IMG/VR virus record: IMGVR_UViG_3300017971_000185
Location: 310,001-374,000 of that record
Reading direction: 5' to 3' (one strand)
DNA length: 64,000 nucleotides
Part shown: one piece after another, positions 2,309 to 53,033 of the stretch
Position numbering within the stretch: position 1 is the first letter of the stretch
Layout of the letters: the number at the start of each line of letters is the position of its first letter
The notes under the pieces: generated by a model
The model's input: only the letters and a program-made list of their open reading frames with translations
Told to the model about the DNA's origin: nothing
Databases searched by the model: none
Made by a program: the position numbers and the translations under genes

Positions 2309-2998
2309 TCACTCGATAGGAGCCCAGGCCCACTCTGCGGTAGCCGTGAATTTCGCCCGGAAGGGGAACGTGATCTGTCGCGTGTCTGCCCTGATTCGTC
2401 TGGGAGGAACGGCGAGGTTGTCCCAATCGGGGAACAGGATGTCCCAAGCCCCTACGTTGCTCTCTTGAGCCATCCAGTCTTCCCAAGTCTCCTCATCATC
2501 GATCACGCGCCCTACTCTCGGCCACTCGGCGTGCTCGATGATCACCCAGGACCAGACCTTGGGGAAGTGCCGGTTGAGCACCATGGTCTCTAGCTTGCTC
2601 TCGATGATGAGAAAGTCACGTCCGCTTACCCGCGTCCGCATGGCTCGCCGCATGCTTTTCAGGGGGTAGCGGATCACTCCAGTCGTGTAGGCTGCGACGG
2701 TGCCCTTCACATCGCGTCGTTCGTGCTGAGCTTTTTCTGCGTCATCGGCAAGATTCTGAAAAGTGCTCTTGTCGGCTTGCGTCACTTGCCGAACAATGTA
2801 GTTGTCTGCGTCGTTCGCCGCAGCGATCAGAGCCTTGACCAGCTTGGGAAGGATGGTTCGCGCCTGATCTTCGAATACTTCTTTCGCGAGCGACTGGAGC
2901 GCCGAAGGAGGGGCTGCCTTCTTGAGCAAAGGAAGCAAGCCTTCCCGAAGTTGCGGTTGTTGCTGGGCGAGCCGGAGAATGCTGCGTCGTAGGCTCAT
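2309..2998 (-). CDS. hypothetical protein with N-terminal LR..I.RLA...P.L...LLPLLK motif
   Basis: 229-aa ORF; motif shared with 60716..61114. Confidence 0.6.
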   Translation of the reverse strand: MSLRRSILRLAQQQPQLREGLLPLLKKAAPPSALQSLAKEVFEDQARTILPKLVKALIAAANDADNYIVRQVTQADKSTFQNLADDAEKAQHERRDVKGTVAAYTTGVIRYPLKSMRRAMRTRVSGRDFLIIESKLETMVLNRHFPKVWSWVIIEHAEWPRVGRVIDDEETWEDWMAQESNVGAWDILFPDWDNLAVPPRRIRADTRQITFPFRAKFTATAEWAWAPIE

Positions 2999-3559: not shown

Positions 3560-3658
3560 ATGTTCATCCTCAGCCGTCGAATATCCAAGCCTGTCGCCCC
3601 CGTTCCCAGCGGTATGGGTGTCGTCGTCGTGCGCTTGGCGTTTGACAGGCGACGGTGA
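3560..3658 (+). CDS. leader peptide MFILSRRISKPVAPVPSGMGVVVVRLAFDRRR
   Basis: SD GAGGT; contains ATA, GTC x4, GTT, AGG and CGG, matching the downstream CAT(Ile2), GAC, CCT and CCG anticodons. Confidence 0.7.
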   Translation: MFILSRRISKPVAPVPSGMGVVVVRLAFDRRR

Positions 3659-14310: not shown

Positions 14311-14653
14311 TCGGTCGAGAGGATGAGGAGATCGCAGCCGCAAGGCTGAGGAAAGTCCGGGCTCCGTAGAGCAGCGTGCTTGGGAAATCCAAGTCGGGGC
14401 GACCCGCAGGAAAGTGCCGCAGAAAGCAAACCGCCGATGGCCTTCGGGCACAGGCAAGGGTGAAAGGGTGGGGTAAGAGCCCACCGGGTTCCTGGCGACA
14501 GGGATCGCATGGTAAACCCCACGCGGAGCAAGACAAACAGAGAGCGCTGAAGTTGCTCGCCTAGCTCTCGGGTTGTCGCAAAGATGAATGATCGCCACCT
14601 GGCAAGGGCAACCGACCCAGGGACAGAACCCGGCTTACGACCCTCTCGGCCGA
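14311..14653 (+). ncRNA. rnpB: RNase P RNA (bacterial type A)
   Basis: GAGGAAAGTCCGGGCTCC, GGAAAGTGCCGCAGAAA, GGTAAACCCCAC..GGAGCAAG and ACAGAACCCGGCTTA; P1 TCGGTCGAGAGG/CCTCTCGGCCGA. Confidence 0.95.
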
Positions 14654-16090: not shown

Positions 16091-16252
16091 GATTGGCGTG
16101 AGCTTGTCAAACCTCCCGTTTAGGGATACAAGGACGCCTGTTCATTTTTGCCTCAAAAGGCGTAAGTAGGAGACAAGCCTTTGTTACACCAAGGTAAGTG
16201 AATCGGAGGCGTCCTAAACGCCGACCAAATCAAACAGGAGAGATAGGAACAC

Positions 16253-16834
16253 ATGCCCGACGACAACTTTGTCCAAGATCTGGAAGATGGCGTTGAGAAG
16301 GATGCTGAAGAACGCAAACGCTCCGACATCCTCAACCGGCTTGCCACGGTGAACCCCACGCTGGAGGATCTCTTCAACGTCTGTCAGAACAGCAAGCTCG
16401 GCGACGTGATGAAGACTTTTACCTTGGACGACCTTGTATCGACGCGCCAGCCGGTCGTTGACGATGATGACGACGATGACGTGTCGGCGCCAGCACCAAG
16501 GAAAAAGCGCGGCAAGAAGAAGGCCGCCAAGAAGACCGCCAAGAAAAAGGTCGCCAAGAAGAAGGTCGCCAAGAAGAAGGCCGCCAAGAAGAAGGTCGCC
16601 AAGAAAGCGCCGAAGACCGGCAAGGCACGCAAGGCTCGTCAAAACTACGATGAGCTAGCCAAGGAAGTTCACGCCTATATGAAGAAGGCTAAGGAGCCCA
16701 TCTCGACTGGTACGATTGTGTCCGAGTTTGGCGTCAGCGGATCGCAGGCGCGCAAGGTGGCTGAGATTCTCGTTGCGGAGAAGAAGGCCAAGCGGCAGGG
16801 CGCGGGACGGGGCACGAAGTACGAGTTGAAGTAG
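16253..16834 (+). CDS. histone H1-like DNA-binding protein with C-terminal wHTH
   Basis: AKKKVAKKK repeats; GAGRGTKY end. Confidence 0.7.
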   Translation: MPDDNFVQDLEDGVEKDAEERKRSDILNRLATVNPTLEDLFNVCQNSKLGDVMKTFTLDDLVSTRQPVVDDDDDDDVSAPAPRKKRGKKKAAKKTAKKKVAKKKVAKKKAAKKKVAKKAPKTGKARKARQNYDELAKEVHAYMKKAKEPISTGTIVSEFGVSGSQARKVAEILVAEKKAKRQGAGRGTKYELK

Positions 16835-16907: not shown

Positions 16908-17492
16908 ATGGTGAAACGAGCAGCCTCACTCCTGTTGTGCGCGTGTGCGGTGACGCAAACTCCCTCCACGGCGATTCCCGAGTACAATCGCAAGGAGTGG
17001 AAGCACTGGATCGATGAAGATCGAGACTGCCAGGACACGCGACAGGAAGTGCTGATTGCTGAGTCCGAGATTCCCGTCACCTTCAAGACCGAGCGTCAGT
17101 GCCGGGTCATCTCGGGTCGCTGGGTTGATCCCTACACAAACAAGATGATCACTGATCCGGGGTTGCTCGACATCGATCACGTGGTTGCGCTCCGCGATGC
17201 GCATGATTCGGGCGGCCATGCTTGGGACGCTGACAAGAAACGAGACTTCGCGAACGATCTCTTCGATCCCGCTCATCTGATGGCCGTCGATCGTTCGGTC
17301 AATCGCAGTAAAGGTTCCCGAGGCCCCGATGCATGGTTACCACCAAACCCAGCTTACCGGTGCGAGTACATCCGAAGCTGGGTGGCGATCATGGGGCAGT
17401 GGGATCTGGACATGACGATTCCCGAAGCCACGATGATTGAGTACATGCTCCGCGTCTGTGATTCAGGTTGTGTGCCTCCGTTGCCGCAGTAG
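16908..17492 (+). CDS. secreted HNH-type nuclease (DUF1524-like)
   Basis: DCQDTRQEVL, DIDHVVAL..AH.SG, NRSKG..GPDAWLP. Confidence 0.8.
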   Translation: MVKRAASLLLCACAVTQTPSTAIPEYNRKEWKHWIDEDRDCQDTRQEVLIAESEIPVTFKTERQCRVISGRWVDPYTNKMITDPGLLDIDHVVALRDAHDSGGHAWDADKKRDFANDLFDPAHLMAVDRSVNRSKGSRGPDAWLPPNPAYRCEYIRSWVAIMGQWDLDMTIPEATMIEYMLRVCDSGCVPPLPQ

Positions 17493-17869
17493 AGTTGGTC
17501 ATGCTCATTCCTGACGACGTGAAAGTACTCTGCAAACACTACGAGCAGTATGTTCCGGTGATCAGGGATCTGGTCACCGAGGCCAATGCGATCATCGAGT
17601 CCCAAGGTCTCACCGAGCTTTGGATCGAGGAGTATAGCGAGCCAGAGCCCTCGATGGGGATCACACCGCTCAAGAACGGCCGAGTCGGGGTCATGGTCTG
17701 GGCTCCCGTGATCAAGGAATTCGATCAAGTGCTCGCGTTTCTCCGTCACAAGGACATCGGTCTGTTCCGTGTGCCGGGCGAATCGATCGGTCGTGTCGAT
17801 GGGATCAGGCTGAGTGGCCCTGACTTCATCGTGCTTCGCGATCTCGCAGACATCCTCGGGAAGTTGTAG

Positions 17870-20181: not shown

Positions 20182-21609
20182 ATGAAGAAGTCTCGTCACC
20201 TCTACCTCCACCCGGAGACCAATCCGGGCAAGATTGCCGCCCTGGAGGCCCTTCACGTCGAGTACGTCAGGTACGTGCGCATCTGCGTGCAGATCATGCT
20301 CGACAACCAGAGGCTCTCCCTCAAACGGTCGGAGAAGCAAGTCTTCTTCCCGAAGGCCGAGAACCTCACCAGCCAGATCCAGAAGAACGCCCGAGACCAC
20401 GCCATCCAAATCGTGAGTACGTGGGCCAAGGCCACCTACGAGCGTGCCGTCAAGAAGCACCTCACCCGAGCACACAGGTTCGGCCAACTTTCCCAGGACG
20501 AACGACACGCCCTCTGCACGGTTGGAAAGCACCTGATCTCAGTGCCTTGGAAGCACGTCACCCAGGAGACCATCGACGCCTACTGGGCACTCCTGCTCGA
20601 CCCAGAGGTCTCTGGTAACCAGCCACGGGTGTCCGAACGCATCCCGATGCGGATGTCGGAGAACACATGCACACTGGCCGACACTGACGAGGCCATCCAC
20701 GCTCCCATGTGGATCAAGATTTCCACGCTGGTCAGCCGGAAAGTCGTCTGGCTTCCGCTCGCAGGGAATCCCTACGTCAAGTCGGCCAACGACGTGTCGA
20801 AGGGAGTCCACGCAAGGAAAGACAAGCGTGGGCGCTGGAGGTTCGAGGTTGTTGAACGCAAGGAGTGGATCGTTCCCGAACTTCAACCCGATGCGCCCAG
20901 GATCGGTGTCGATGTCGGCCTGAACGTCGTGGCCGCCACCTCGGATGGCCGGACGTTCGGAGCAAGTCTCAAACCCAAGTTCGACCGCCTCTACGAGCGC
21001 GTCAGGAACCTTCGTGCGAACCGTCAACGACAGGGTTTCAAGGAGAACAGCCCTCGGCTCAACCGGCTCGAAGACAAACTCACCAGGATGGTAAAGACGA
21101 TCACCGGGGAGGTGGCCAACAGGCTCATCAAGAGCGCACCCGAAGGCACGGTTTTCGTGATCGAAGACTTGGACCTGCGTGGGTGCCGTGGTCAGAAGAG
21201 GTTCGCGTACCGGGCCCTGGCCCACAGCTTGGAGACGAAAGCGCCCACCTTGAAGGTGAATCCGGCGTACACGTCTCAGACTTGCCCTTCCTGTGGTTAC
21301 GTCTCTCGACGTAACCGATCAGGAACCGATTTCGTCTGCCGCTCATGTGGCAGGCGTTCTCATGCCGACGTGGTGGGAGGGATCAACCTGCTGAGACGTT
21401 CTCAGGACGAACAGGTTGACCTCAACGATCACCATCGAGACGTGAGGGAGTTGCTGCGAAAACGATACCGGGCCCGTAGGGCCGGGGACAGTTCCGCAGG
21501 ACTCTGCCGAAAGGCACCCGCGCCTGAACCGTCAGGCCGGAGGCTCACTACCGGAGTATCTCCCCCGAGGAGAGGACGGCACAGCCTCGAATCCGATGCT
21601 TACCTTTGA
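20182..21609 (+). CDS. tnpB: TnpB RNA-guided RuvC nuclease
   Basis: GVDVG, IEDL, PAYTSQTCPSCG, CRSCG..HADVVGGIN; catalytic D/E/D intact. Confidence 0.9.
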   Translation: MKKSRHLYLHPETNPGKIAALEALHVEYVRYVRICVQIMLDNQRLSLKRSEKQVFFPKAENLTSQIQKNARDHAIQIVSTWAKATYERAVKKHLTRAHRFGQLSQDERHALCTVGKHLISVPWKHVTQETIDAYWALLLDPEVSGNQPRVSERIPMRMSENTCTLADTDEAIHAPMWIKISTLVSRKVVWLPLAGNPYVKSANDVSKGVHARKDKRGRWRFEVVERKEWIVPELQPDAPRIGVDVGLNVVAATSDGRTFGASLKPKFDRLYERVRNLRANRQRQGFKENSPRLNRLEDKLTRMVKTITGEVANRLIKSAPEGTVFVIEDLDLRGCRGQKRFAYRALAHSLETKAPTLKVNPAYTSQTCPSCGYVSRRNRSGTDFVCRSCGRRSHADVVGGINLLRRSQDEQVDLNDHHRDVRELLRKRYRARRAGDSSAGLCRKAPAPEPSGRRLTTGVSPPRRGRHSLESDAYL

Positions 21610-23277
21610 GTAGGTTTTGGAGTACGGTATAAGGTAGGACACAGAGGCACGAATGGACGTTCCCGGTTGAGTGAGGCCAAACTAGATGCCCCGCAAGATG
21701 CGTAAGAGTATCTCAGTAAAAGGACTGACCTATTTTCGACTTCAGCGCTTGGCTGAGGAAAGGGGCGTGGGTATCGGTGGTCTGGTTGAAGAGTGGGCGA
21801 GAGAGGACATGCTCAAGAAGCATCCTCCACAACCGCACATTCTCTACGAGGTTCGGACCGGCCTGAAGGCGGGCACGAGCAAAGACACGATGATCCATGT
21901 CGTTGCTCCCTCGGTAGAGAAAGCGACAATGTGGGCCGAGATGGAATTGCAGGCGGCCACGGGAAGTCTCATCGTCATGCCTTCGCAGCGTCCGTTCAAC
22001 CCGGACAAGATCACCTACGCCCACATCGGCGTAGTAAACTCCAGCGAGCTAGCGGAGATCTGTCGATGACCGATCGAGTACATGCGTTGACCGTGATCCT
22101 TGAACGCGAGTACCGGGATGATGACGTTGAGGCAATCGTCAACGCGATCAAGATGATGCGTGGTGTTCTTGATGTGAAGCCGCACATCATCGAGGACATC
22201 GATTTCTACTCGTCGCGGGAGCAGGCCAAGTTTGAGCTACGACAGGAGATGCGCGAGGTTTTGTGGCCCGGCATTGCGAAGCGGAAAGGGTAACCATGCG
22301 CTTGGCGTGTTTCTGTTGGGGTGTGGCGAAAGATGGCCACACCTTGCATACGAACACCGCTGCACGACAGAAGAGGCGAAAACCGCTCTGGCGGCTTGGG
22401 TAGCGGCGTGCATCAAGGACGCGAACCCCATGTCTGATGAAGAGCCTGAGGATTGGATCTATCAGTGCGAGAACACGGGGAAACGTATCTTGTGTGAGGA
22501 GGTTCCCGTAGTGGTCTACATACCTAGCGGGTCGAGCAACTGGAAGAAAGTGTCCTGCGCGAAGGCTCACGAATCGATCAGGGACGTTTGTCCCAGGTAG
22601 GCCATGCGGACACGAGACGTGCTGCTGGTACTTGTCGCCGGTTTCTGCCTTGGCGTCACCTACACCGTTAGCGTGCTCTACCTATCGCGGAGCCGAGAGC
22701 GTATGCCTGGGACTAAGCCCATGATGCTGTCGTGGAATGGGTCGCCTGTAGACTGCATCCCGCTTTGTGGGTGTTTCACACCGATTCTTGACGATGGTGA
22801 CGTGGCGATCGTGCATGGCTTTACCGTGGCCACAGATCTGAACGCCCCAACATCAGCCAACCCAGCTTTCTTCGCTCGCTGTACGGTCTGCGGCCAAACC
22901 CTGAAGCGTTGGGTTGAGGTTCCTGACCGGTAGAGTGACGGTATGTTTGACGATGAGTCCATGATCGTCGTGCATGTGGGCTACGCATGGGACGGTCAGG
23001 ACGGCTGGACGTTTGCGCTGAGCCCTGAAACAGCGCATCGTCTTGAGGAAACGAAGACCCATCGGGCGACACGAGTTTTCGTTGGGAACGGCAACCCCGG
23101 TGATACAGACCCGAGGCAGTACGCTCACCTAGGCGATGGCGTGGGTCCTGAGAAGAAATGGAAGCGATGGAAGATCATCGCCTCGATGTTGACGGGAATT
23201 CCAGAAGCCGATCTGCCAACGTGCATGTTTCGTCGGATGCCCGAGGACACGTTGCTGGAGACGCTGGAAAAAAGCGC

Positions 23278-23306
23278 TTGACTTTGGCTCTGTCTGTCCG
23301 TACAAC
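23278..23306 (+). promoter_or_regulatory. sigma70-like promoter of the Pro/Arg/Leu/Tyr tRNA operon
   Basis: TTGACT-N17-TACAAC. Confidence 0.7.
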
Positions 23307-23326
23307 TGCATCTGAGGCGGAAAGCC

Positions 23327-23446
23327 ATGACACAAATGCGGAACACACTCGGGTTGAGCACCTACCAGTCATTACTGGCGGGGAGGCTCCCCTTGCGTCC
23401 GTATTTGCGCCCGCTGCCGCCACCCCGACTTAGGGGCGCCCTCTAG
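23327..23446 (+). CDS. leader peptide MTQMRNTLGLSTYQSLLAGRLPLRPYLRPLPPPRLRGAL
   Basis: 24 of 39 codons are Leu, Pro, Arg or Tyr, the amino acids of the downstream tRNAs. Confidence 0.75.
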   Translation: MTQMRNTLGLSTYQSLLAGRLPLRPYLRPLPPPRLRGAL

Positions 23447-23487
23447 GCTAGAGGGCAGGCGACAGCGGGAGAGACAGCCCGCGCACG

Positions 23488-23564
23488 CGAGGCGTAGCGC
23501 AATCTGGTAGCGCGTTCGGTTTGGGTCCGAAAGGATGCTGGTTCAAATCCAGTCGCCTCGACCA
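23488..23564 (+). tRNA. tRNA-Pro(TGG)
   Basis: Cloverleaf with CCA. Confidence 0.93.
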
Positions 23565-23565
23565 C

Positions 23566-23644
23566 GCCCCTGTAGCTCAGTGGACTCAGAGCATCGGTCT
23601 ACGGAACCGAGTTGTCGGAGGTTCGAATCCTTCCAGGGGTGCCA
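23566..23644 (+). tRNA. tRNA-Arg(ACG)
   Basis: Cloverleaf with CCA. Confidence 0.93.
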
Positions 23645-23646
23645 AA

Positions 23647-23724
23647 CGAGGCGTGGCTCAGTCTGGCTAGAGCGCCGCGTTCGGGACGCGGAGAACGGTG
23701 GTTCGAATCCACTCGCCTCGACCA
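23647..23724 (+). tRNA. tRNA-Pro(CGG)
   Basis: Cloverleaf with CCA. Confidence 0.93.
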
Positions 23725-23764
23725 AAGGAGTACAAAGAGGAAGAGGAACAAAGGAACAACGAAA

Positions 23765-23839
23765 CGGGATGTGGCTCAGTCTGGTTAGAGCACCGGTCTG
23801 GGGGACCGGGGATCACTGGTTCGAATCCAGTCATCCCGA
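23765..23839 (+). tRNA. tRNA-Pro(GGG)
   Basis: Cloverleaf. Confidence 0.92.
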
Positions 23840-23870
23840 CGAAGGTAGTGGTCGGGGTAGGATGTGGGTG

Positions 23871-24452
23871 ATGGCGTCCGACCACAAACGATGTAATCGG
23901 TGTGGGACTACAAAACCCACATCTGCTTTTTCCTACAAAACAGTCTACGGAGGTCGGTATCTCCGAACAGCTTGTCGGATCTGTGAGAACAAGAAACGAA
24001 GTGAAAGGAGGAAACGTTCGCCAAGCGCGGCGGACAAAGTAAGAGAGCAAAGACAACTGGATAGAAGATCGCGTATGCGGGCCGCAGGCATCGATTTGCC
24101 AAGATGGATCCTAACGGATTCGCGAGCGTCCGATCGAAAGAAAGGGCTTTCTAACGACTTGACCAAGTCGTTTATCGCAGAACGGATAGCGCAGGGCTGT
24201 TGCTATTGTGGCGACAAGACGATCCGTATGACCTTGGATCGGATTGACAACAACCAAGGACACACCCGAAACAATGTTGTACCGGCCTGCATTCGATGCA
24301 ACTACATCCGAAGGGACATGCCTTTCGAAGCATGGTTGCTTGTCACGGGAGCGATTCGGGAAGCTCGGAAGAGAGGGTTGTTCGGAGAATGGACTGGAAG
24401 AGCACGCAAGCCGCGGATGGCGTCAAAAGCGCGGGTGGTGAAATTCAGGTAA
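23871..24452 (+). CDS. HNH-type homing endonuclease inside the tRNA cluster
   Basis: CNRCG..CRIC; CCYCG..TLDRIDN..GHTRNNVVPACIRCN. Confidence 0.8.
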   Translation: MASDHKRCNRCGTTKPTSAFSYKTVYGGRYLRTACRICENKKRSERRKRSPSAADKVREQRQLDRRSRMRAAGIDLPRWILTDSRASDRKKGLSNDLTKSFIAERIAQGCCYCGDKTIRMTLDRIDNNQGHTRNNVVPACIRCNYIRRDMPFEAWLLVTGAIREARKRGLFGEWTGRARKPRMASKARVVKFR

Positions 24453-24514
24453 ACACGCAGCCTTGAGGTGGCTGTGCCCAACAGGGTTTGAGGGTTCGAG
24501 TCCCTCCTCGCGCA
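24429..24514 (+). tRNA. tRNA-Leu(GAG)
   Basis: Type II cloverleaf. Confidence 0.92.
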
Positions 24515-24526
24515 CGAGCGACATGA

Positions 24527-24602
24527 GCGCAGGTAGCCCAACTCAGGTAGAGGCGCTGGATTTAGGTTCCAGAGGTTGCGGGTTCGACTCCCGCCTTGCG
24601 CA
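24527..24602 (+). tRNA. tRNA-Leu(TAG), short variable loop
   Basis: Loop TT-TAG-GT; no long variable arm. Confidence 0.88.
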
Positions 24603-24610
24603 CGGATTCT

Positions 24611-24696
24611 TGGTCGGTATGCAAGAGGTTAAAGCAAGCAGTCTGTAAAACTGCCGCGTTCGCGCTTCGTGGGTTCAAATCCCTCCCGGCCAGCCA
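24611..24696 (+). tRNA. tRNA-Tyr(GTA)
   Basis: Type II cloverleaf, loop CT-GTA-AA; unusual T1-A72 and G73. Confidence 0.88.
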
Positions 24697-24722
24697 GATT
24701 CGGAGTAGAAAGGAGAAGAAAC

Positions 24723-25898
24723 ATGACACAGAAGCAGCACATCAACGTAGGAACCATCGGACACGTGGACCACGGGAAGACCACCCTCACGGCGGCCATC
24801 ACGATGGTCATGGCAGCGATCAACGGAGGCGAGATCAAGACCTTCGATCAGATCGACAAGGCGCCCGAGGAGCGTGAGCGAGGAATCACAATCAACACGG
24901 CGCACGTCGAGTACGAGTCGGAGACTCGCAACTACGCGCACATCGACTGCCCAGGCCACGCCGACTACATCAAGAACATGATCGTCGGTGCGTCCCAGAT
25001 GGACGGCGCGGTACTGCTTGTGGACGCTTCTCAGGGGCCGCAGCACCAGACGCGTGAGCACGTTCTCCTGGCGAAACAGGTGGGCGTCTCGCACATGGTG
25101 GTGTTCATCAACAAGGTGGATATTGCAGATCCCGAGATGCTGGAGCTTGTAGAGATGGAGGTTCAAGATGCTCTTGCCCAGATGGGCTTCGAGGACACTC
25201 CGTTTATTCGGGGCTCCGCGCTCAAGGCACTGGAGGCCGCGAGCGAGGGGAAGATGGACGATCCCGAGATCGAGCCAGTCAAGGCGCTCATCGCCGCGAT
25301 GGACGAGCACCTTCCGGTGCCCAAGCGAGATCGGGAGAGTCCGTTTCTCATGCCCATCGAGAATGTCCACACGATTCCAGGCAGGGGCACGGTCGTGACA
25401 GGTCGTGTGGAGAGGGGCATTCTCACCAAGGGGCAGACGGTGGAGATCGTGGGTCGGACGGACGGGAAGCCCCTGGCTGCGGTCGTCACGGGAATCCAAG
25501 CGTTCCACAAGGACATCCCCGAGGCGGCGGCGGGTCTCAACATCGGCATGCTCCTACGTGGCATCGATCGGGATGAAGTCCTGCGTGGTCAGGTAGCAGT
25601 TGCTCCTGGCTCCTTGCTTCCTCACGAGAAAGGCAAGGCCGAGATCTTCACACTCACAGCCAAGGAGGGTGGTCGTCACACTTCGTTCTCTGGCGGATAC
25701 AGGCCACAATTCTACTTTGGCGCCACTGACGTGACTGCGGCAGTCGTGCCGGAGGATGGGAAAGTCGTCGAGCCTGGCGATCGGGCCACGGTGGACTTTG
25801 AGCTAGTGAGTCCGGTTGCTTGCGAGCCCGGCATGAGGTTCGCCATCCGCGAGGGTGGCAAGACCGTAGGTGCTGGGATGGTCACGGAGGTAGTCTAA
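24723..25898 (+). CDS. tuf: elongation factor Tu
   Basis: [50 protein letters not shown]; SD AAGGAG. Confidence 0.97.
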
Positions 25899-25925
25899 CA
25901 ACCTGGAGGGCTGAGGCCCTCCTCT

Positions 25926-26012
25926 GCTCGAATGGCGGAATCTTCGGTAGACGCGCACGGTTCAGGTCCGTGTACCCTCACGGGTGTAGGGGTTCGAGTC
26001 CCCTTTCGAGCA
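25926..26012 (+). tRNA. tRNA-Leu(CAG)
   Basis: Type II cloverleaf. Confidence 0.92.
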
Positions 26013-26093
26013 CTAAAGGGGTAATGGAGGCAGATGACCAAAACATGCCAAACGTGTAAATTTTGGAAGCATTCGATGGTGAAGAGAAAAAGC

Positions 26094-26163
26094 AAGCAAA
26101 GGACCCTGTACTTCTCCATTGGTTCTCAAAGCAAAGGACCCTGTACTTCTCCATTGGTTCTCA
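26094..26163 (+). repeat. 35-nt tandem duplication inside a degenerate small ORF
   Basis: AAGCAAAGGACCCTGTACTTCTCCATTGGTTCTCA x2. Confidence 0.85.
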
Positions 26164-26281
26164 GAGGGTACGGGCACGCCGAACCTCCCGAGAGAGGGCT
26201 TCTCGTGGAAAATGACGAAGAGTGGGGGCATCCTCACGGGGCCTTACTTCGGCTGTGTCAACCACGAAGAGTGATTATCGA

Positions 26282-26368
26282 GGCCAGGTGGCGAAGTTGG
26301 TAGACGCAGCGGATTCAAAATCCGCCGCCCTCACGGGCATGAGGGTTCGACTCCCTCCCTGGCTACCA
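26282..26368 (+). tRNA. tRNA-Leu(CAA)
   Basis: Type II cloverleaf with CCA. Confidence 0.93.
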
Positions 26369-26375
26369 CTCTGGT

Positions 26376-26617
26376 AGAATCGAGACATCATGGCAGTCAA
26401 GATGGACCCACTTGGCCGGAGGATCATGAGGTTTTTTCGTCAGCTTGGATATGAGGACGGTACGCAGGTTGCATTGCACGCGGGGTTGCTGGGCTGCCTC
26501 GTGATTTGTGCGCTGTTCATAAATTACTGCGGTGCCAAGCCAACGACCGAAAACGATCCAGCTTCGCGGGCGCGTATTCGACGAGAATCGAGACATCATG
26601 GCAGTCAAGACGGACCC
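26376..26617 (+). repeat. 34-nt direct repeats at 26376 and 26584
   Basis: AGAATCGAGACATCATGGCAGTCAAGA(T/C)GGACCC. Confidence 0.85.
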
Positions 26618-26637
26618 GGCAATTTTTCGTTGCAAGA

Positions 26638-26829
26638 CTATCCTGAGTAACCGTCTTTTCCCCATCCAACGCCGCCAGGAGCCAACATGAAGTTGCTGAC
26701 TCCCATAATTTGTTCCATCGTGCCCTTTGAGTCGCACGCGGCACACTTGGCCGGAGGAGGATCGTTCATCTTCTGGATTTCCTCGACTACGTGTCCGCAT
26801 TTACGGCACTTGTAGACGTAGATGGGCAA
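26638..26829 (-). CDS. FmdB-family zinc-ribbon protein
   Basis: MPIYVYKCRKCGH...CAAC...GWGKDGY. Confidence 0.85.
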   Translation of the reverse strand: MPIYVYKCRKCGHVVEEIQKMNDPPPAKCAACDSKGTMEQIMGVSNFMLAPGGVGWGKDGYSG

Positions 26830-26849
26830 CGATCACACCATACCGAGAC

Positions 26850-26922
26850 GCGCAGGTACGCCAACGGTGAGCGGGCCGACTTAAAATCGGCTGTCCTGCG
26901 GGTTCGACTCCCGCCCTGCGTA
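26850..26922 (+). tRNA. tRNA-Leu(TAA), short variable loop
   Basis: Loop CT-TAA-AA. Confidence 0.85.
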
Positions 26923-31854: not shown

Positions 31855-32405
31855 GTGGTCTTTTCTCCTCTAGAGGCTCTACGCGAGAATGGCCCGATAG
31901 TATACTTTTGGGGGTAAGGTACTTGAAAAGATTGGGGTTTTTCGAGCGCTTTGCTGACGCTCGATCCTTTTGGCGTAGGATAGGACACATGGCCGGTGGA
32001 GGAATCCCAGTCCAGTATCTCATTCCCGAGCGCTACGTGGAGACCAAGGTTTGCCGCTGCGCTGACCATCCCGACGCTCGCGCTTCCTTATTTGAGATTG
32101 CCTTCCGTGTCGCGTGTCCTGTGTGCGGCAAACCAATGGAGCGGATCTCCAAGTGGATTGATGCCTGGACCTTAACTCTGGAGCCTGGTTGGACCGGAGA
32201 CCCGCACCCTCCGAAGGGTGCCGTCTCTATTAAAGGAAGCTGAGCCCGTGGCTCGCACTACCGCCGGTAGTGTGGGGCATGTCGGCAAACAGCGATCACG
32301 TGGTGGGATTGGTACAACGCCAACCAGGCCAGCTATCGGTGGGAGGTCATCAAGGAGGCGGAGTTTCCCGCAAACATGCGCGCGCGAGCGTGATCCAATT
32401 TCTGC

Positions 32406-32434
32406 TTGACTTCCAGCAGGAAGAGGCGTACACC
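32406..32434 (+). promoter_or_regulatory. sigma70-like promoter of the Thr/Asp/Val tRNA operon
   Basis: TTGACT-N17-TACACC. Confidence 0.6.
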
Positions 32435-32482
32435 CGTTCTAGTCGCTCCCCTTGGCAGGACAGCGACGGAAACATTCACGCC

Positions 32483-32578
32483 ATGACGAAACGCACCACA
32501 ACAACAGCTATGCTCAGTGCCCGAGTGGCCCTGCATGGCTTTGTACGTCCAAATATGGACGATACGACCCCGTGTTGA
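32483..32578 (+). CDS. leader peptide MTKRTTTTAMLSARVALHGFVRPNMDDTTPC
   Basis: 7 Thr codons (ACG, ACC, ACA) plus GAC/GAT and GTA/GTG. Confidence 0.75.
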   Translation: MTKRTTTTAMLSARVALHGFVRPNMDDTTPC

Positions 32579-32656
32579 GCGTTTCCCCGGCGTGAACCAA
32601 GACAAAGAGACAAAGCGCCGGGGGCCGCCGGTACGGGCAGGGCTGCCTAGCCGAAC

Positions 32657-32728
32657 GCTAGCGTAGCTCAACGGTAGAGCAGAGCACTTGTAATGCTCAG
32701 GTTGTCGGTTCAAATCCGACCGCTAGCT
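32657..32728 (+). tRNA. tRNA-Thr(TGT)
   Basis: Cloverleaf. Confidence 0.93.
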
Positions 32729-33094: not shown

Positions 33095-33220
33095 ATGCCT
33101 GACGATGATGACGATGACGATGATCGCTTGCCCGCGTTGGTGAAGTCTGGTCTATCACGCTTGGTTGTCAGCCAAGAGGTCATGGGTTCAAATCCCATAC
33201 GCGGGGCTGGAGGTCCGTAA
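33095..33220 (+). CDS. leader peptide MPDDDDDDDDRL..., reading through tRNA-Asp
   Basis: SD AAGGAGG; 8 consecutive GAC/GAT codons ending 6 nt before tRNA-Asp. Confidence 0.8.
   Translation: MPDDDDDDDDRLPALVKSGLSRLVVSQEVMGSNPIRGAGGP
33131..33206 (+). tRNA. tRNA-Asp(GTC)
   Basis: Cloverleaf, loop TT-GTC-AG, G73. Confidence 0.9.
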
Positions 33221-33325: not shown

Positions 33326-33865
33326 ATGAACGGAGAAGCATTTGCATTTTCCGACGAATCGCGCAAAGCTCAGTTTGGCGCGACTAAAGTCTGTTCTAGG
33401 TGTCGTAGGGAGCTTCCTGTTGCCGACTTTTCGTATGCGAGCCGTGTAAAGCTCTATGCCTGGTGTCGCGACTGCGCACGGACTTATCAGCGGGAAGTCT
33501 ATCGGACGTTTGAGGGGCAGATGAAGCATCGGGTTCGTGCGGCGCGAGGAAGGGCTCAGCGATTTGGTTTAGATTTCGATCTTGCCGTTCAGGATCTTCT
33601 TGAGTTGTGGGACGAACAGGACGGGAAGTGTGCAATTTCAGGATTGCCCATGGTCATCGATAGCGAAGAGGAGAAAGGGAAGCAAGCGTTTCGTCCGTCC
33701 GTTGACCGCATCGTTCCGAAACGCGGATACGTTCGGGGGAACATTCGGCTGGTGACGACTATCGTAAACTTCGGGATCAACAAGTGGGGTCTCGATCCGT
33801 TTCTTGCCATGTGCGAAGGTGTTGTTCAAACCATAGGCGAAAGGAAGGCATACCATGACTGTTGA
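33326..33865 (+). CDS. HNH-like endonuclease
   Basis: CSRC..CRDC; GKCAISG..PSVDRI....GY..GNIRLV..VN. Confidence 0.75.
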   Translation: MNGEAFAFSDESRKAQFGATKVCSRCRRELPVADFSYASRVKLYAWCRDCARTYQREVYRTFEGQMKHRVRAARGRAQRFGLDFDLAVQDLLELWDEQDGKCAISGLPMVIDSEEEKGKQAFRPSVDRIVPKRGYVRGNIRLVTTIVNFGINKWGLDPFLAMCEGVVQTIGERKAYHDC

Positions 33866-35747
33866 AAACCTGGGGCCTGCTGAAAAGATCATCCAAGCTC
33901 TTTTGACGCACACGGACCATCTCTACCACAACCGACCGGGAATCGTGGTTGCCGACCGGCGTACCACGACTGGCGTGCGGTGGGATCCTGTCACGTGGAA
34001 GGCAGGCGAGAACGGTGAGCGTACCGTCTACCGTTTGGTGAAGGCGGGACGTAAGCAGCGTCGTGTCGAGATCGGCACGATGAACGGCGAGAACCGCAAG
34101 ATCATGAAGGACGGAGCCGAGGTAGGCGAGTACCGTCCGAGCGGCTTGTACCCCGAAGTCGCCATTTGGTTCTACAAGCAAGTTGCCGAAGTGTGGAAGC
34201 TGGACAACGAGTTTGCCGCACGTTGGGCATCGTTCGCGTTCCGTCAGGACCACCGCGATCTCAAGGTCGTTCTGGCCGCCTTCCTCTTGGTCCAGTCGCG
34301 TAAGGGCGATCCCGTCATGGACGGCATGGTCCGTCTGTTCGCGGATGAGGACTACAGGGACGTGGGCGAGGCGATGATCTTGCTCCAAGAGAAGGGCAAG
34401 GATCTCAACCCGAAGCTGTTGCTCCGCATCTGGGAGGTTCTCTCGTTGCCGGAGATCGCGGCTGTCAACCGCGAGCTTGGTTTCGGCAAGTCGGCAAAGC
34501 GTCCATTCCTGGGTCGTTGGAGCAGGGCGGTCGAGAAGTGGCTCCGCTACCGTGAAGAGAACCCGAAGATGCTGGAGGGTCTCGTCAAGGCCGGATTCAG
34601 AACCACGGTGATGACGCTTGCCCGGAAGATCGGCTACAAGCCCACGACTGATCGGTTCTTCGAAGTCCTGCGCTGGAAGCAGAAGCAGGCCGAAGATGGC
34701 CGTCGTGAGATGGCGATTGGCAAGGAAGTCAAGGCGGCCGAGTCTTGGGCGGATCTCGATGAAATGTCGATCTGCGAGATCATCGAGAAGACCAAGCCGA
34801 ATTGGAAGCGGATCGTTGGTTTGCTTCCTTCCGAGGTTGGCGTGACCCGTGCAATCATGGCTGCGGCCATCGAGGCAGGCTCTCTGTCGGACAAGGACAT
34901 CATCATCCTGACGCCGACGTTGGAGGAGCTTGGGCTGCTCAAGGTCCAAGAGATCAAGGAACGTCTCGACTCGGCCCTGGCTCGGGCGAACGACATGCGT
35001 GCGGCCAACATCGCTCGCAACGTCCGTGACAAGGAGACCAAGGAGACGCTGGAGGCGGGTGCCGACAAGGCCGCTCAGAAGGTGGTCGAGGAAGTCGCAC
35101 GCGACATCACCATCGACTTCATCGTTGACATTTCGGCTTCGATGGAAGGCGCCCTGGATGCGGCCAAGCCGCTCATCGCCAAGTTTCTCCAGGCCCTTCC
35201 GGCTGATTACGTCAATGTTGCCGTGTTCAACACGGCAGGCCGTGAGGTCAAGGTCAAGCACAACTCGACCAAGGGCGTCGAGGCCGCTTTCCGCGGCATC
35301 AAGGCCGGAGGAGGCACTGACTACGGTGCGGGTGTGCGGGCAGTCCAGAAGCACGCGACCCCGGAAGGCCACGATCGCATCATGGTCTTCATTGGGGATG
35401 AGGAAGCACGGCCGTTCGATGAGGCTGTGAGGGTGTCGGGTCTCAACCCGGTTGCCTTCGGATTCCTCAAGACGGTTCCCTTCGGAGGAGCCGCAGCGTG
35501 GCGTTATCGGCACTACGGGCCGGACGGCAACATCGCAGTGCGGGAGACGGCTGCTCGTCTCAACATCCCATGCTTCATGATCGATGACCGCACTTTCGAG
35601 GACCCCTACGCAATCACTCGCACTCTCCAGGCTTTGATTGCGGCGACTCCGGTTGGGGAAGTGACTCAGGCTCGTCCGCGTCCGCGCGTGACGCTCGTTG
35701 ATCAGATTCTCAACACTGAGTTGCTTGCTAAGCCCGCATGGGCATGA
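33855..35747 (+). CDS. Ro60/TROVE-like protein with a C-terminal vWA domain
   Basis: Long helical N-terminal region, then MIDAS motifs VDISASM, GGTD and IGDE; TROVE assignment inferred from architecture and context. Confidence 0.65.
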   Translation: MTVENLGPAEKIIQALLTHTDHLYHNRPGIVVADRRTTTGVRWDPVTWKAGENGERTVYRLVKAGRKQRRVEIGTMNGENRKIMKDGAEVGEYRPSGLYPEVAIWFYKQVAEVWKLDNEFAARWASFAFRQDHRDLKVVLAAFLLVQSRKGDPVMDGMVRLFADEDYRDVGEAMILLQEKGKDLNPKLLLRIWEVLSLPEIAAVNRELGFGKSAKRPFLGRWSRAVEKWLRYREENPKMLEGLVKAGFRTTVMTLARKIGYKPTTDRFFEVLRWKQKQAEDGRREMAIGKEVKAAESWADLDEMSICEIIEKTKPNWKRIVGLLPSEVGVTRAIMAAAIEAGSLSDKDIIILTPTLEELGLLKVQEIKERLDSALARANDMRAANIARNVRDKETKETLEAGADKAAQKVVEEVARDITIDFIVDISASMEGALDAAKPLIAKFLQALPADYVNVAVFNTAGREVKVKHNSTKGVEAAFRGIKAGGGTDYGAGVRAVQKHATPEGHDRIMVFIGDEEARPFDEAVRVSGLNPVAFGFLKTVPFGGAAAWRYRHYGPDGNIAVRETAARLNIPCFMIDDRTFEDPYAITRTLQALIAATPVGEVTQARPRPRVTLVDQILNTELLAKPAWA

Positions 35748-38845: not shown

Positions 38846-38973
38846 GCCGGACATGACCCGTGGGGGTCACCCGATTTTCCATCGGTAACGATCCGACAGC
38901 ACCACTCGCCCCTCAAGAGGGGCTCACGGATGATGTCCACAAGCACTGCCAGGTTCGACTCCTGGGTCCGGCG
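38846..38973 (+). ncRNA. tRNA mimic type A1 (open acceptor, module inserted in the variable loop)
   Basis: GCCGGAC/GTCCGGC; D, anticodon and T arms; GACA..CACTC-hairpin-..TGTC-CACAAGC insert. Confidence 0.75.
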
Positions 38974-38974
38974 C

Positions 38975-39104
38975 TGAAGCAACCAACCAGACAGGGCTCA
39001 CACGCAAAGTAGCTCATTGGGTAGAGCATCGGTATCGCAAACCGAGGGTAGCTGGTTCAAGTCCAGTCCTTGCAACAAACAAGCTCTTCAACTCGGTTGC
39101 TTCA
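38975..39104 (+). ncRNA. Y-like RNA type B1 (whole tRNA mimic nested inside the module)
   Basis: Outer stem TGAAGCAACC/GGTTGCTTCA; loop ATCGCAA. Confidence 0.75.
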
Positions 39105-39144: not shown

Positions 39145-39272
39145 GGCGGACCAGGCCCGGTGGGGGCCAACCGACTTACACTCGGCAACGATCCGACACC
39201 AACACTCGCCTCTTTCGAGGCTCCTCGGTTGAATGTCCACAAGCTAGCCTGGTTCGATTCCAGGGTCCGCCT
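39145..39272 (+). ncRNA. tRNA mimic type A2
   Basis: Paralog of A1 with compensatory changes (GGCGGAC/GTCCGCC; CCTGG/CCAGG). Confidence 0.75.
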
Positions 39273-39274
39273 CT

Positions 39275-39404
39275 GAAGCGACCAAACCCGAAAGGGCTCA
39301 CAAGCAAAGAAGCTCATTTGGCTGAGCGTCTCGATCATAACGAGAAGGTAGCTGGTTCAACTCCAGTCCTTGCACTCTGTTCAGCCCCTCAACTCGGTCG
39401 CTTC
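39275..39404 (+). ncRNA. Y-like RNA type B2
   Basis: Paralog of B1; GAAGCGACC/GGTCGCTTC; loop ATCATAA. Confidence 0.75.
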
Positions 39405-39412
39405 CACTATTC

Positions 39413-39556
39413 GATCAACGCCAACAGATCAATCTCACAAGCATTGTTGGTTCGATTCCAACCCCCGCCACTCATGGCGGGGTAGCCAAATGGTAAAGGC
39501 ACCGGTACAAGGAACCGGCGTGAAAACGCAATCAGGTTTTTCACTCGGCGTTGATC
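39413..39556 (+). ncRNA. Y-like RNA type C1 (permuted: T arm, closed acceptor, D arm, anticodon arm)
   Basis: GATCAACGCC/GGCGTTGATC; CCCCGCCA-CTCA-TGGCGGGG. Confidence 0.8.
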
Positions 39557-39612
39557 AACTTTCCCTTCTCGGGTGCGGCTCTCGCGAGCCCCCGATTTTC
39601 ACCCCAACAGTA

Positions 39613-39765
39613 TTGGTCAATGCCAACAGATCAACCTCACAAGCATCATGTTGGTTCGAGTCCAACCTCCCCCACCCATGGGGGAGTAGCCTAACTGGAA
39701 AAGGCACCAGACGTGTAAATCTGGCGTGTAAACGCAATCAAGGTTTCTCACTCGGCGTTGACCAA
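39613..39765 (+). ncRNA. Y-like RNA type C2
   Basis: TTGGTCAATGCC/GGCGTTGACCAA; CTCCCCCA-CCCA-TGGGGGAG. Confidence 0.8.
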
Positions 39766-39769
39766 GTTT

Positions 39770-39853
39770 TTCTCCCCGAGCGACGGCGCTTTCGCCAACT
39801 CCGTCAGGACCGGAAGGTAGCAGCGGTAACGGAGGACCGGGTGCTCGGGGGAA
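39770..39853 (+). ncRNA. ffs: small SRP RNA (4.5S-like)
   Basis: Helix-8 motif GTCAGGACCGGAAGGTAGCAGC inside a hairpin closed by CCCCGAGC/GCTCGGGG. Confidence 0.85.
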
Positions 39854-39905
39854 CGTTTCACCGAGCCGGGGTCGTCGGTGGGCGCTTATCGCCGCGGAGA
39901 GGCGT

Positions 39906-40085
39906 CTGATCCGGTTCCGGGGTTTGGAGTCGCGTCCAAACCTCGGGCCGGGGAACCCCGCATGATGATTTTCCTTGACCCTTTCTTGGAGGTTCGGCAC
40001 ACTCAACACATCGTAATCCCGAGGGCGGTCGCCCCATCTACGGAACCGGCCTCGAATCTCTAACCCCAACCAGAGCACGGATCAG
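39906..40085 (+). ncRNA. 6S-like RNA candidate
   Basis: 180-nt rod: CTGATCCG/CGGATCAG, GGGGTT/AACCCC, central bubble, GGGCCGG/CCGGCCT. Confidence 0.4.
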
Positions 40086-40087
40086 TG

Positions 40088-40156
40088 ATGGACGACGACA
40101 TTAGCGACATTATCCGACATGGGTTCGTAGCTCAGTTGGTTAGAGCGCTGCCCTGA
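40088..40156 (+). CDS. leader peptide MDDDISDIIRHGFVAQLVRALP, reading into tRNA-Ile
   Basis: ATT..ATT ATC ending 6 nt before tRNA-Ile(GAT); stop lies in the anticodon loop. Confidence 0.6.
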   Translation: MDDDISDIIRHGFVAQLVRALP

Positions 40157-40737: not shown

Positions 40738-41114
<377 letters not shown>

Positions 41115-43647: not shown

Positions 43648-43680
43648 ATGTCCGGTATCCGTCTGAAACGCAAGACCTAG
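43648..43680 (+). CDS. leader peptide MSGIRLKRKT (probably leaderless mRNA)
   Basis: Contains both AAA and AAG; pairs with the 5' end of tRNA-Lys. Confidence 0.65.
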   Translation: MSGIRLKRKT

Positions 43681-47506: not shown

Positions 47507-47593
47507 ATGTTGAGTCGTCTGAATACCAGCCCGCGCAGGCCCGCTCTCGTTGAACGAGAGCGCGAGGCTGAAGTACGCCTGCGCGGGGAGTAA
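47507..47593 (+). CDS. leader peptide MLSRLNTSPRRPALVEREREAEVRLRGE
   Basis: 5 Glu codons (GAA and GAG) in the 3' half. Confidence 0.75.
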   Translation: MLSRLNTSPRRPALVEREREAEVRLRGE

Positions 47594-48705: not shown

Positions 48706-49506
48706 ATGGGCAGCAAAAGCTCACTTGGGGACCGCATGAAGCGATACGAGCAAGTGCCGCGCACATCGCTCACGCCCCGGACTCCCATGATTATCCGCAT
48801 CGATGGGCGGGCGTTTCACACGTACACGAAGAACATGCAGAAGCCGTGGGACCCGGTTCTGCGGGATGCTCTCACGGCCGCTGCACAGGAGCTTCTGCGC
48901 GAGATTGCTGGAGCGAAGCTGGCTTACCTCCAGTCGGACGAGATCTCTGTGCTCGTGACCGACTACGACAAGCTCACGTCGCAAGCGTGGTTCGACAAGG
49001 TGGCCCAGAAGATCTGCTCCGTGTCGGCGTCTATCACCACAGCCGTCTTCAACCGCGGCGTACTGGAGACTTTCCTTGGGCGCTACGATGTTCGCGAGTT
49101 GAAGGGGGCTGACGGCAGTCTCGACACAGCGATGCTTCCTCCTCCGGCACATTTCGACAGCCGATGTTTCGTGGTCCCGCGTGAGGATGTCACCAACTAC
49201 TTCGTGTGGCGCCAGCAGGACAGCACGCGAAACTCCGTCTCGGCTCTCGCGCAATCGCACTTCTCACATGAGGAGCTACAAGGCAAGAAGTGGGGTCAGA
49301 TGCAGGAGCTACTGTTCCAGGAGAAGGAGATCAACTGGAACGACTGCGAGACCTGGCAGAAGCGTGGTTGGTGTGTCTTGCGGAGCACTGTGGAGATCGA
49401 ACCGGGCAAGATGCGAGTGATCGTTGAGCCGGACCTGGAGGTCCCTGTTTTCTCCAACTATCGCGCGTACATCGAGAAGTATCTTCATTTGGACACGGAC
49501 GCCTAG
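48706..49506 (+). CDS. thg1: tRNA(His) guanylyltransferase Thg1-like protein
   Basis: IIRIDGRAFHTYT, YLQSDEIS, FDSR, YFVWRQQD..RNS. Confidence 0.92.
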   Translation: MGSKSSLGDRMKRYEQVPRTSLTPRTPMIIRIDGRAFHTYTKNMQKPWDPVLRDALTAAAQELLREIAGAKLAYLQSDEISVLVTDYDKLTSQAWFDKVAQKICSVSASITTAVFNRGVLETFLGRYDVRELKGADGSLDTAMLPPPAHFDSRCFVVPREDVTNYFVWRQQDSTRNSVSALAQSHFSHEELQGKKWGQMQELLFQEKEINWNDCETWQKRGWCVLRSTVEIEPGKMRVIVEPDLEVPVFSNYRAYIEKYLHLDTDA

Positions 49507-52400: not shown

Positions 52401-53033
52401 CTACTCAGAGTCCGGGTTGCTATGGTGGGCGACTACAGCATGGCAAAATTCCACTAGGCAATCGTCTGTAAAGCGATTCTTGGCGAAATTAGCGATGCAT
52501 GCTACGAAGCGCACGTTTCCTTTGACGTAGCCGAGGGCGTTCTCAATGCGATCCAGGCTAGGCTTCCAGGGGTCATTTTTGCGTTGTTCCCATGCCACCA
52601 CGGTCGGCGGCAACGTCAATTGGATTCCAGAGATTGCGCAGCGGCCTTGCTGTTTTTCCCACAGGGTCTTGAGGTAAGGAAGATCGATATTGACATGATG
52701 TTTTCGCTGTCGAGCTTTGCGTAAGAAGTATCGAAAGGGCGAGAATTCATCGCGACGATTGTCCGCGCGAAGCCTGCTTGTATCGCAGTCGGGCTTGAGA
52801 GGCGCAGCGCCGTGCGCGCCAAAACACTTCAAGGTGCAGTAGAATTTCCGATGGGGGTTGCGTTTTCGCTGGCGTTTGATTTCAGAGGGATCTTTCTCGA
52901 ACAATCGCCCGCAACCGTCACAGGAGATCTGTTCTAACAAACGCAACCGTGTGACTGTAGGCTGCTGTCGGAACGCTGTCAAGCCTAGTCCGCCTATAGA
53001 GGCTCCTATGTAGTAGGCCGCGAAGAACGCCAC
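52401..53033 (-). CDS. HNH-like endonuclease
   Basis: GRCAISG..PSLDRIENALGYVKGNVRFV..AN; start uncertain. Confidence 0.75.
   Translation of the reverse strand: MAFFAAYYIGASIGGLGLTAFRQQPTVTRLRLLEQISCDGCGRLFEKDPSEIKRQRKRNPHRKFYCTLKCFGAHGAAPLKPDCDTSRLRADNRRDEFSPFRYFLRKARQRKHHVNIDLPYLKTLWEKQQGRCAISGIQLTLPPTVVAWEQRKNDPWKPSLDRIENALGYVKGNVRFVACIANFAKNRFTDDCLVEFCHAVVAHHSNPDSE

Follow-up and report, generated by a model that had tools for sequence, protein, structure and literature searches.

Why should a short open reading frame (ORF) crowded with Leu, Pro, Arg and Tyr codons stand between a promoter and a series of transfer RNA (tRNA) genes that serve the same amino acids? The question is raised by a locus in a stretch of 64,000 nucleotides (nt), hereafter the window, which covers positions 310,001 to 374,000 of the IMG/VR virus record IMGVR_UViG_3300017971_000185 and comes from a huge phage with a translation island. 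At this locus a 39-codon ORF precedes ten tRNA genes and tuf, the gene for elongation factor Tu (EF-Tu). On balance, we lean towards the view that positions 23278-23469 form a promoter-proximal translated leader of this tRNA/EF-Tu unit, by which the ribosome may sense the supply of charged tRNA. Sequence comparison across five lineages supports the leader ORF as a selected, frame-specific and codon-matched element between a conserved promoter and the first tRNA, and the ORF is probably translated.

The composition of the leader ORF is far from that of other small ORFs. It comprises ten Leu codons (three CTC, three TTG, two CTG, one TTA and one CTT), six Pro (three CCG, two CCC and one CCA), six Arg (CGT, CGC, CGA, CGG and two AGG) and two Tyr, in agreement with the counts given for a 39-codon leader at 23327-23446 by an earlier note on this DNA. 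Among 330 small ATG ORFs in the window it ranks first by its share of Leu, Pro, Arg and Tyr (L/P/R/Y; 0.615 versus 0.288 +/- 0.085), and also first by its share of Leu and Pro. The run of 17 consecutive L/P/R/Y codons, which we call the control block, is the longest in the six frames of the window; the next has 12 codons, and the expected count of runs of at least 17 is 8e-5. Strict decoding by the ten tRNAs encoded downstream is possible for 21 of the 39 codons (P = 5e-4). None of these tRNAs is without a codon in the leader (P = 0.02), and each is represented in the control block as well. The L/P/R/Y share in the other five frames of the leader DNA is 0.18-0.32. The earlier note had proposed a null model in which GC-rich hairpins shape the composition. 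This null was run and fails, as only the ORF frame is enriched and as the run and small-ORF statistics contradict it; GC or hairpin bias was ruled out as the source by the six-frame comparison and the small-ORF nulls in five lineages.

Relatives were found by EF-Tu searches and by a DNA pattern made from the leader core. Four further lineages carry the same locus, namely L021/L037 (618-kb contig), L009/L038/L043/L044 (230-kb contig), L155 and L156, and their EF-Tu proteins are 67-75% identical to that of the window. All four possess TTGACT, a 17-nt spacer and a -10 hexamer of the TAC or TAT type, then a short 5' untranslated region with GAGG, GAGAG or AAGG at the equivalent distance from the ATG. 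Their orthologous ORFs have 37-41 codons, 50-59% of them L/P/R/Y. The leader's share is at or near the top among the small ORFs of each lineage's loci (z = 2.2-3.9), and it is highest in the ORF frame in all five lineages. The LRPYL core in the window, L021 and L156 displays five synonymous changes and no replacement; L155 is without PY, and L009 has PA where the others have RP. A C-terminal motif, (R)LPG(V/R)(L/P), is common to four lineages and absent from the window. Between L021 and L009 the sole indel within the ORF is of 3 nt, and the indels past the stop are of 1 and 2 nt. The run of three Pro codons, for which a role in sensing elongation factor P (EF-P) had been suggested, is present only in the window lineage, and the EF-P idea is dropped as it has no comparative support for that reason. 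Searches with the leader peptide alignment, DNA-pattern searches of genome contigs and in a last viral scan, and searches with Thg1 and with the protein encoded at 56266-56880 gave only self, distant or chance matches.

The leader RNA is predicted to be highly structured. The fold of 23310-23490 has z = -4.1, and the predicted leader structures of the window and its relatives are stable throughout (z = -4 to -5). In the window, the last 12 codons and the stop are predicted to lie within a three-way junction, with the stop at the apex of the hairpin 23438-23456. It had been claimed before that the Pro run at 23410-23421 pairs with 23458-23469 and that the stop codon sits in a hairpin; both features recur in the minimum-energy fold, the former with 11 of 12 pairs. 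A modelled ribosome footprint abolished the outer stem of the junction when the P site lay at codons 25-36, and left this stem intact when it lay at earlier codons. In the relatives, a hairpin H1 is predicted to enclose the last codons and the stop, the latter at the apex or adjacent to it, and a second hairpin H2 then follows. Both show compensatory changes, and the 3' arm of H2 is able to pair with two different 5' partners. A conserved tail, GGTCGTTTAAGCCCCAG, stands after H2 and is slightly altered in L155; the window has the three-way junction instead. In the full-length fold, the transcript 5' end (GAGGCG) pairs with the 3' acceptor strand of tRNA-Pro, which we take as coincidence because the similarity is not conserved in relatives. 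Rfam leader and T-box models gave no match at E <= 1 for 23200-23500 or 32380-32660 and none at gathering score in the window, by which a T-box or known Rfam leader identity was ruled out.

If the leader is a sensor of charged tRNA, the speed of the ribosome through the control block would indicate how well Leu, Pro, Arg and Tyr tRNAs are supplied in charged form. While a ribosome pauses at codons 25-36 the junction would stay open, and once the ribosome has finished and left, the junction would be free to close. The open or closed state would then set how much of the downstream pre-tRNA and tuf transcript is made or matured, by escape from termination or pausing at the junction or by the access of RNase P or another RNase 5' of the first tRNA. 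Most likely this would be a negative feedback, in which shortage leads to more tRNA.

The Pro/Leu/Arg/Tyr leader is not alone: most other tRNA clusters of the phage clade have a sister leader that matches their own tRNAs. By translating the DNA upstream of other tRNA clusters, we found further mini-ORFs rich in the cognate residue (Table 1); several of them have the same promoter motif ahead of them, and the majority are conserved among relatives. For Thr, Lys, Glu, Ser, Pro and Leu, every isoacceptor has a codon in its own leader. Matching leaders were counted in three lineages for Thr, three to four for Asp, two of three for His, two each for Lys, Arg/Ser/Gly/Ala and Trp/Cys, five to six for Tyr and two to three for Ile. 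The Thr leaders of L048 and L049 differ in the positions of Thr, with a compensatory change in the hairpin within the ORF and a conserved hairpin past the stop. Asp leaders are also found in L048, L049 and L062, the His leader in L048 and the Ile leader in L049. The Lys leader is found in L048/L146, and a second Lys-rich type in L052, L062, L069 and L073. L149 possesses both the Arg/Ser/Gly/Ala and the Trp/Cys leaders, and the stop-codon hairpin of the latter is rebuilt there from different sequence. Strong AGGAGG sites precede the Asp and Trp/Cys leaders. Tyr-rich leaders (Y-x-Y or Y-x-Y-x-Y), often following an acidic DDD run, stand before tRNA-Tyr and tuf in L021, L155, L009, L156, L154 and probably L033; the window has no separate Tyr leader.

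These leaders fall into two types. In type A (Pro/Leu, Thr, Lys, Glu and Trp/Cys), the ORF ends within a very stable predicted structure (z = -3 to -6), the 3' arm of which ends 0-18 nt 5' of the tRNA. The ORF of type B (Asp, His, Ile and some Tyr) lacks structure and continues into the tRNA; often its ribosome-binding site is strong and its N-terminus acidic. A canonical terminator was found in none of the leaders of either type. In type B, a stalled ribosome would stay out of the tRNA and favour downstream tRNA synthesis or 5' maturation. We tentatively extend this to a doubtful but attractive scheme, in which the phage clade would run a tRNA feedback for each amino acid, the own-codon mini-ORF of each sorted unit would gate the maturation or synthesis of its tRNAs, and two designs would coexist. 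In one, a hairpin with the stop at its apex would abut the tRNA 5' end, as would also hold for the Ser/Gly/Ala leader. In the other, an unimpeded ribosome would invade and unfold the tRNA; if scarcity of this tRNA stalled the ribosome, the tRNA would be able to fold and RNase P could cut it.

Several observations weigh against the leader as a sensor of charged tRNA. No U tract follows 23469, where a consensus terminator scan finds nothing, and the relatives have only a weak tail, GGTCGTTTAAG, after H2. No mutually exclusive antiterminator pairing was found in the window leader, the folds of which give two stable domains. The earlier note had entertained transcriptional control; with both the U-tract terminator and the antiterminator pairing lacking in the window, classical transcriptional attenuation is unproven. 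The missing U tract is in itself weak evidence against termination, because the region has no excess of canonical terminators (8 found versus 6 expected). The sign of the regulation is not fixed by the anatomy. The N-terminal halves of the leaders are unalignable or unconstrained, and the overall ratio of nonsynonymous to synonymous substitution is ~0.65-1, a whole-leader value that is uninformative because the ORF is short and its N-terminal half cannot be aligned. The His run of L049, as an exception, is out of frame with its ATG.

The system-level statistics speak in part for a sensor and in part against it. In an objective test, all ORFs within 200 nt upstream of 23 tRNA heads in the window were scored by whether their most over-represented residue belongs to the cluster or not. 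Six matches were found versus 2.2 expected (P = 0.017); in a strict version that considers only the first tRNA, six heads fall in the top two versus 2.4 expected (P = 0.03), and an earlier sliding-window test gave a combined P = 0.07. Once all 23 heads are counted, the in-window statistics are modest, and a matching leader is absent at the heads of Phe, Asn, Ala (39003), Met (39303) and the internal Leu. More distant huge phages show no enrichment, with 5 of 119 tRNA heads at P < 0.05 in one survey and 41 matches at 550 heads versus ~27-33 expected in another; a rule general to all huge phages is not supported by these surveys. The codon-matching pattern is real but lineage-specific, because of the matchless heads, the lack of enrichment in distant phages and the mixed array of the distant GenBank relative Rctr197k. 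Its main support is the conservation across lineages and not the in-window P value.

Three other explanations were weighed. In an attenuator of the pyrBI type, a ribosome reaching the stop in the junction would block the hairpin, a feed-forward in which the tRNA/EF-Tu transcript would become more abundant when charged tRNA is plentiful and scarcer when it runs short; the parts would be those of the sensor, with the sign reversed. This accords with the position of the stop, at or next to the hairpin apex in five Pro/Leu-type leaders and at the apex in both Trp/Cys leaders, and with the finding that nothing 3' of the junction in the window is able to act as a separate terminator. We nevertheless judge it unlikely: there is no U tract, so the hairpin is not recognisable as a terminator, the result would be a positive feedback on tRNA supply with no obvious benefit, and the Asp, His, Ile and Tyr leaders reading into their tRNAs have no hairpin at all. 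A slightly less likely proposal is that the region is an untranslated structured 5' leader of the pre-tRNA, serving as a processing, stability or pause element, with the ORF and its composition as by-products. The enrichment in one of six frames in five lineages and the 17-codon run expected only 8e-5 times argue otherwise, as do the conserved start, ribosome-binding site and stop, the purely synonymous changes in LRPYL, the 3-nt indel within the ORF against those of 1 and 2 nt past the stop, and the matching leaders with strong AGGAGG before Asp and Trp/Cys. What would fit such an element are the very stable folds without a terminator, the N-terminal half that is not conserved as peptide and the out-of-frame His run of L049; small ORFs are, moreover, frequent in DNA of 58% G+C.

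The least likely of the three, in our view, is a sequence-specific arrest peptide or functional Pro/Arg-rich micropeptide acting independently of tRNA supply. As amino-acid sequence, LRPYL is retained by three lineages and (R)LPG(V/R)(L/P) by four, yet L155 is without PY, L009 has PA for RP and the window is without the C-terminal motif; a peptide of this kind would also leave the match of ten other leaders to their own tRNAs unexplained. The segment RLPLRPYL (23384-23410; PYLPRLPR in L021 at ~857-890) may resemble the YLPRP core of ribosome-binding proline-rich antimicrobial peptides.

The unit headed by the sensor candidate begins with a promoter that overlaps the upstream gene (22943-23281) at its stop codon. 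The motif TTGAC-N18-TACA is present in five copies in the window versus 0.21 expected, and four of the five, at 23278, 32406, 43610 and 47469, precede leader-plus-tRNA units; a variant is found at 56884, ahead of the Arg/Ser unit. The fifth copy, at 52956-52982 on the minus strand, leads leftward into an ORF without leader for a Cys-rich, zinc-finger-like protein, which shows that promoters of this type are not confined to tRNA units.

Table 1. Features of the Pro/Leu/Arg/Tyr locus, sister leaders and other RNA genes. Positions are those of the window, except for the Tyr leaders of relatives, which are given with the label of the relative.
Feature	Positions	Strand	Basis or remark
Sigma-70-like promoter, TTGACT, 17 nt, TACAAC	23278-23306	+	Motif scan; same motif in L021, L009, L155, L156
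GAGG, Shine-Dalgarno-like, 9 nt 5' of ATG	23314-23317	+	At predicted transcript 5' end; read from sequence
Leader ORF, 39 codons and TAG	23327-23446	+	24/39 codons Leu/Pro/Arg/Tyr
Long imperfect hairpin over first two thirds of leader ORF	23331-23408	+	Minimum-energy and centroid fold
Control block, 17 consecutive Leu/Pro/Arg/Tyr codons (codons 20-36)	23384-23434	+	Contains conserved core RLPLRPYL
Three-way junction: outer stem 23410-23421/23458-23469, inner hairpins 23423-23436 and 23438-23456	23410-23469	+	Minimum-energy fold
tRNA-Pro(UGG), tRNA-Arg(ACG), tRNA-Pro(CGG), tRNA-Pro(GGG)	23488-23840	+	ARAGORN, Rfam
Endonuclease VII/HNH-type homing endonuclease ORF	23862-24452	+	phrog_1035, E = 1e-22; no Pfam match
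tRNA-Leu(GAG), tRNA(UAG), tRNA-Tyr(GUA)	24429-24696	+	ARAGORN, Rfam
tuf, full-length EF-Tu	24723-25898	+	Pfam GTP_EFTU, D2, D3
tRNA-Leu(CAG)	25926-26012	+	Rfam 46.7 bits; not called by ARAGORN
tRNA-Leu(CAA)	26282-26368	+	Small ORF between tRNA-Leu(CAG) and this tRNA
Zn-ribbon gene	26638-26829	-	Between UAA tRNA and remaining tRNAs
tRNA with anticodon UAA	26850-26923	+	74 nt, class I shape
Met/Val/Arg cluster mini-ORF	3560-3658		Rich in cognate residues
Thr x3 leader	32483-32578		7 Thr including run of four
Asp leader	33095-33130		AGGAGG site; eight Asp codons, last 6 nt before tRNA; ORF reads into tRNA
Ile leader	40088-40120		
His leader	40738-40786		HHH ends 7 nt before tRNA
Lys x2 leader	43648-43680		One AAA and one AAG, for UUU and CUU tRNAs
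Glu x2 leader	47507-47593		
Arg/Ser x4/Gly x3/Ala leader	56928-57080		27/50 codons cognate; four Ser isoacceptors all represented
Trp/Cys leader	60035-60067		Ten codons, one TGG and one TGT
Tyr leader in L021	L021 3563-3760		
Tyr leader in L155	L155 6370-6540		
Tyr leader in L009	L009 3650-3695		
Tyr leader in L156	L156 4140-4184		
Tyr leader in L154	L154 1850-1915		
Class A RNase P RNA, full-length	14315-14653		247 bits
Small signal recognition particle (SRP) RNA	39767-39859		57.7 bits

Downstream of the leader, the genes are less uniform than the ten-tRNA operon with EF-Tu that the earlier note described. The ten tRNAs and tuf are present, but a single ten-tRNA operon is not established because the UAA tRNA lies past the minus-strand gene at 26638-26829. 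A long variable arm is expected in a bacterial tRNA-Leu; the UAG tRNA (24527-24603, 77 nt) and the UAA tRNA have none, which is atypical for tRNA-Leu and leaves their identity uncertain. The endonuclease VII/HNH ORF sits between tRNA-Pro(GGG) and tRNA-Leu(GAG) and overlaps the start of the latter; another endonuclease VII/HNH homing-endonuclease gene was found among tRNA genes at ~39370-39909. The small ORF between the two tRNA-Leu genes (26034-26303) holds a 33-nt tandem duplication (~26098-26163), and the ORF 26390-26650 is flanked by a ~30-nt direct repeat (~26380/26585).

The gene tuf closely follows tRNA-Tyr, which ends at 24696, and its ribosome-binding site lies 26 nt past that tRNA. 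The same Tyr-tuf adjacency was found in L009, L021, L155 and L156. The window seems to have its Tyr-tuf unit joined to the Pro/Arg/Leu unit, the leader of which has two Tyr codons. That tuf would be induced by the same signal as the tRNAs, as had been suggested, is plausible, given that it is on the same strand as the leader with no internal copy of the promoter motif in between; in the relatives, however, tuf stands behind tRNA-Tyr and a Tyr-codon leader of its own.

The window is part of a 497-kb IMG/VR viral contig, and a second contig of 372 kb is identical. It has a G+C content of 58%, and a total of 44-46 tRNA genes were predicted in it by ARAGORN and Rfam, together with genes for EF-Tu, Thg1, an L7/L12 protein, TnpB and homing endonucleases. 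Unusually, the tRNAs of this clade are sorted by amino acid, in the window as Pro x3, Leu x5, Thr x3, Ser x4, Gly x3, Ala, Lys x2, Glu x2 and Asn x2; Rctr197k has a compact array in mixed order. The closest cellular EF-Tu and L7/L12 sequences are from Nannocystaceae/Myxococcota, from which a host in this group is only a guess. Thg1 (tRNA-His guanylyltransferase), a PTS_2-RNA (Tpt1/KptA-like) protein and a TnpB/Cas12f-like protein are encoded at 48706-49506, 59036-59644 and 20182-21609, respectively; the PTS_2-RNA label rests on synteny with L149. In L149, ARAGORN also predicted a transfer-messenger RNA (2550-2917, minus strand). An element of ~135 nt is repeated at ~38860-39000 and ~39160-39300, and is also found in L048 (~16170-16310) and L049 (~17480-17620). 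It has an acceptor-like stem (GGCGGAC/GTCCGCC) and a T arm ~100 nt apart, lies directly 5' of a tRNA and is without Rfam match. A conserved 630-aa VWA protein is encoded at 33855-35747, and its L153 relative is labelled TROVE/vWA_Ro60; the element and this protein could be a Ro60 plus Y-RNA-like pair.

How does the putative sensor compare with known systems? Leader-peptide transcription attenuators control amino-acid operons (thrL, leuL, hisL and trpL) and pheST (pheM). Like them, the phage leader is a short ORF, with its start and ribosome-binding site, between the promoter and the first gene, possesses a run of clustered cognate codons and has its 3' part in hairpins; the Thr leader of the phage even starts MK(R/H)STT, as does thrL in kind. 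Unlike them, it stands before tRNAs and EF-Tu and not biosynthetic enzymes or a synthetase, mixes four amino acids in one leader, is phage-borne and belongs to a multi-operon set. A canonical intrinsic terminator is not present before tRNA-Pro, neither a U tract nor a 2:3 antiterminator was found, and the Rfam Thr, Leu and His leader models do not match. The pyrBI-type attenuator shares a leader ORF that runs into the terminal hairpin, but the phage hairpin is without a U tract. In the Pro-codon leaders mgtL/mgtP of Salmonella mgtA/mgtCBR and in the Rho-dependent tnaC, a leader ORF senses translation speed, as the phage leader would, and the output need not be an intrinsic terminator; those leaders, however, control protein-coding genes, and the phage leader has no recognisable rut site in its G+C-rich, highly structured RNA. 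T-box riboswitches sense tRNA status in cis for translation-related genes, as the phage leader would, but bind uncharged tRNA directly and without translation.

In the E. coli tufB operon, the order is thrU-tyrU-glyT-thrT-tufB. There, too, tuf is immediately preceded by tRNA genes of the same strand, with tRNA-Tyr among them. A leader ORF is absent from tufB, whereas the phage tuf stands behind a codon-matched leader, of Pro/Leu/Arg/Tyr in the window and of Tyr in relatives. Among the tRNA arrays of huge or jumbo phages, this one is ordinary in its inventory (~500-kb contig, ~46 tRNAs, EF-Tu, L7/L12, RNase P RNA, SRP RNA and Thg1) and differs in its promoter-plus-leader units sorted by amino acid; the arrays of Rctr197k and others are mixed and without matching leaders. 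A full-text literature search yielded no account, for phages or for bacteria, of a leader ORF ahead of tRNA genes. As far as could be found, leader-peptide sensing, known for amino-acid biosynthesis, has not been described for tRNA genes, EF-Tu or phages.

The leader elements are shorter than 200 nt and directly testable in reporter and in vitro systems. If the leaders sense charged tRNA, this would account for the sorting of tRNAs by amino acid in these phages, and for the way in which a phage of 500 kb adjusts the dose of its near-complete tRNA set in the course of an infection. Translation and RNA processing would then be coupled in a new manner by those leaders whose ORFs run on into the tRNA. 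A virus so equipped could answer codon-specific translation stress or host tRNA cleavage, and might make good precisely the tRNAs that run short or that anticodon nucleases of the host destroy.

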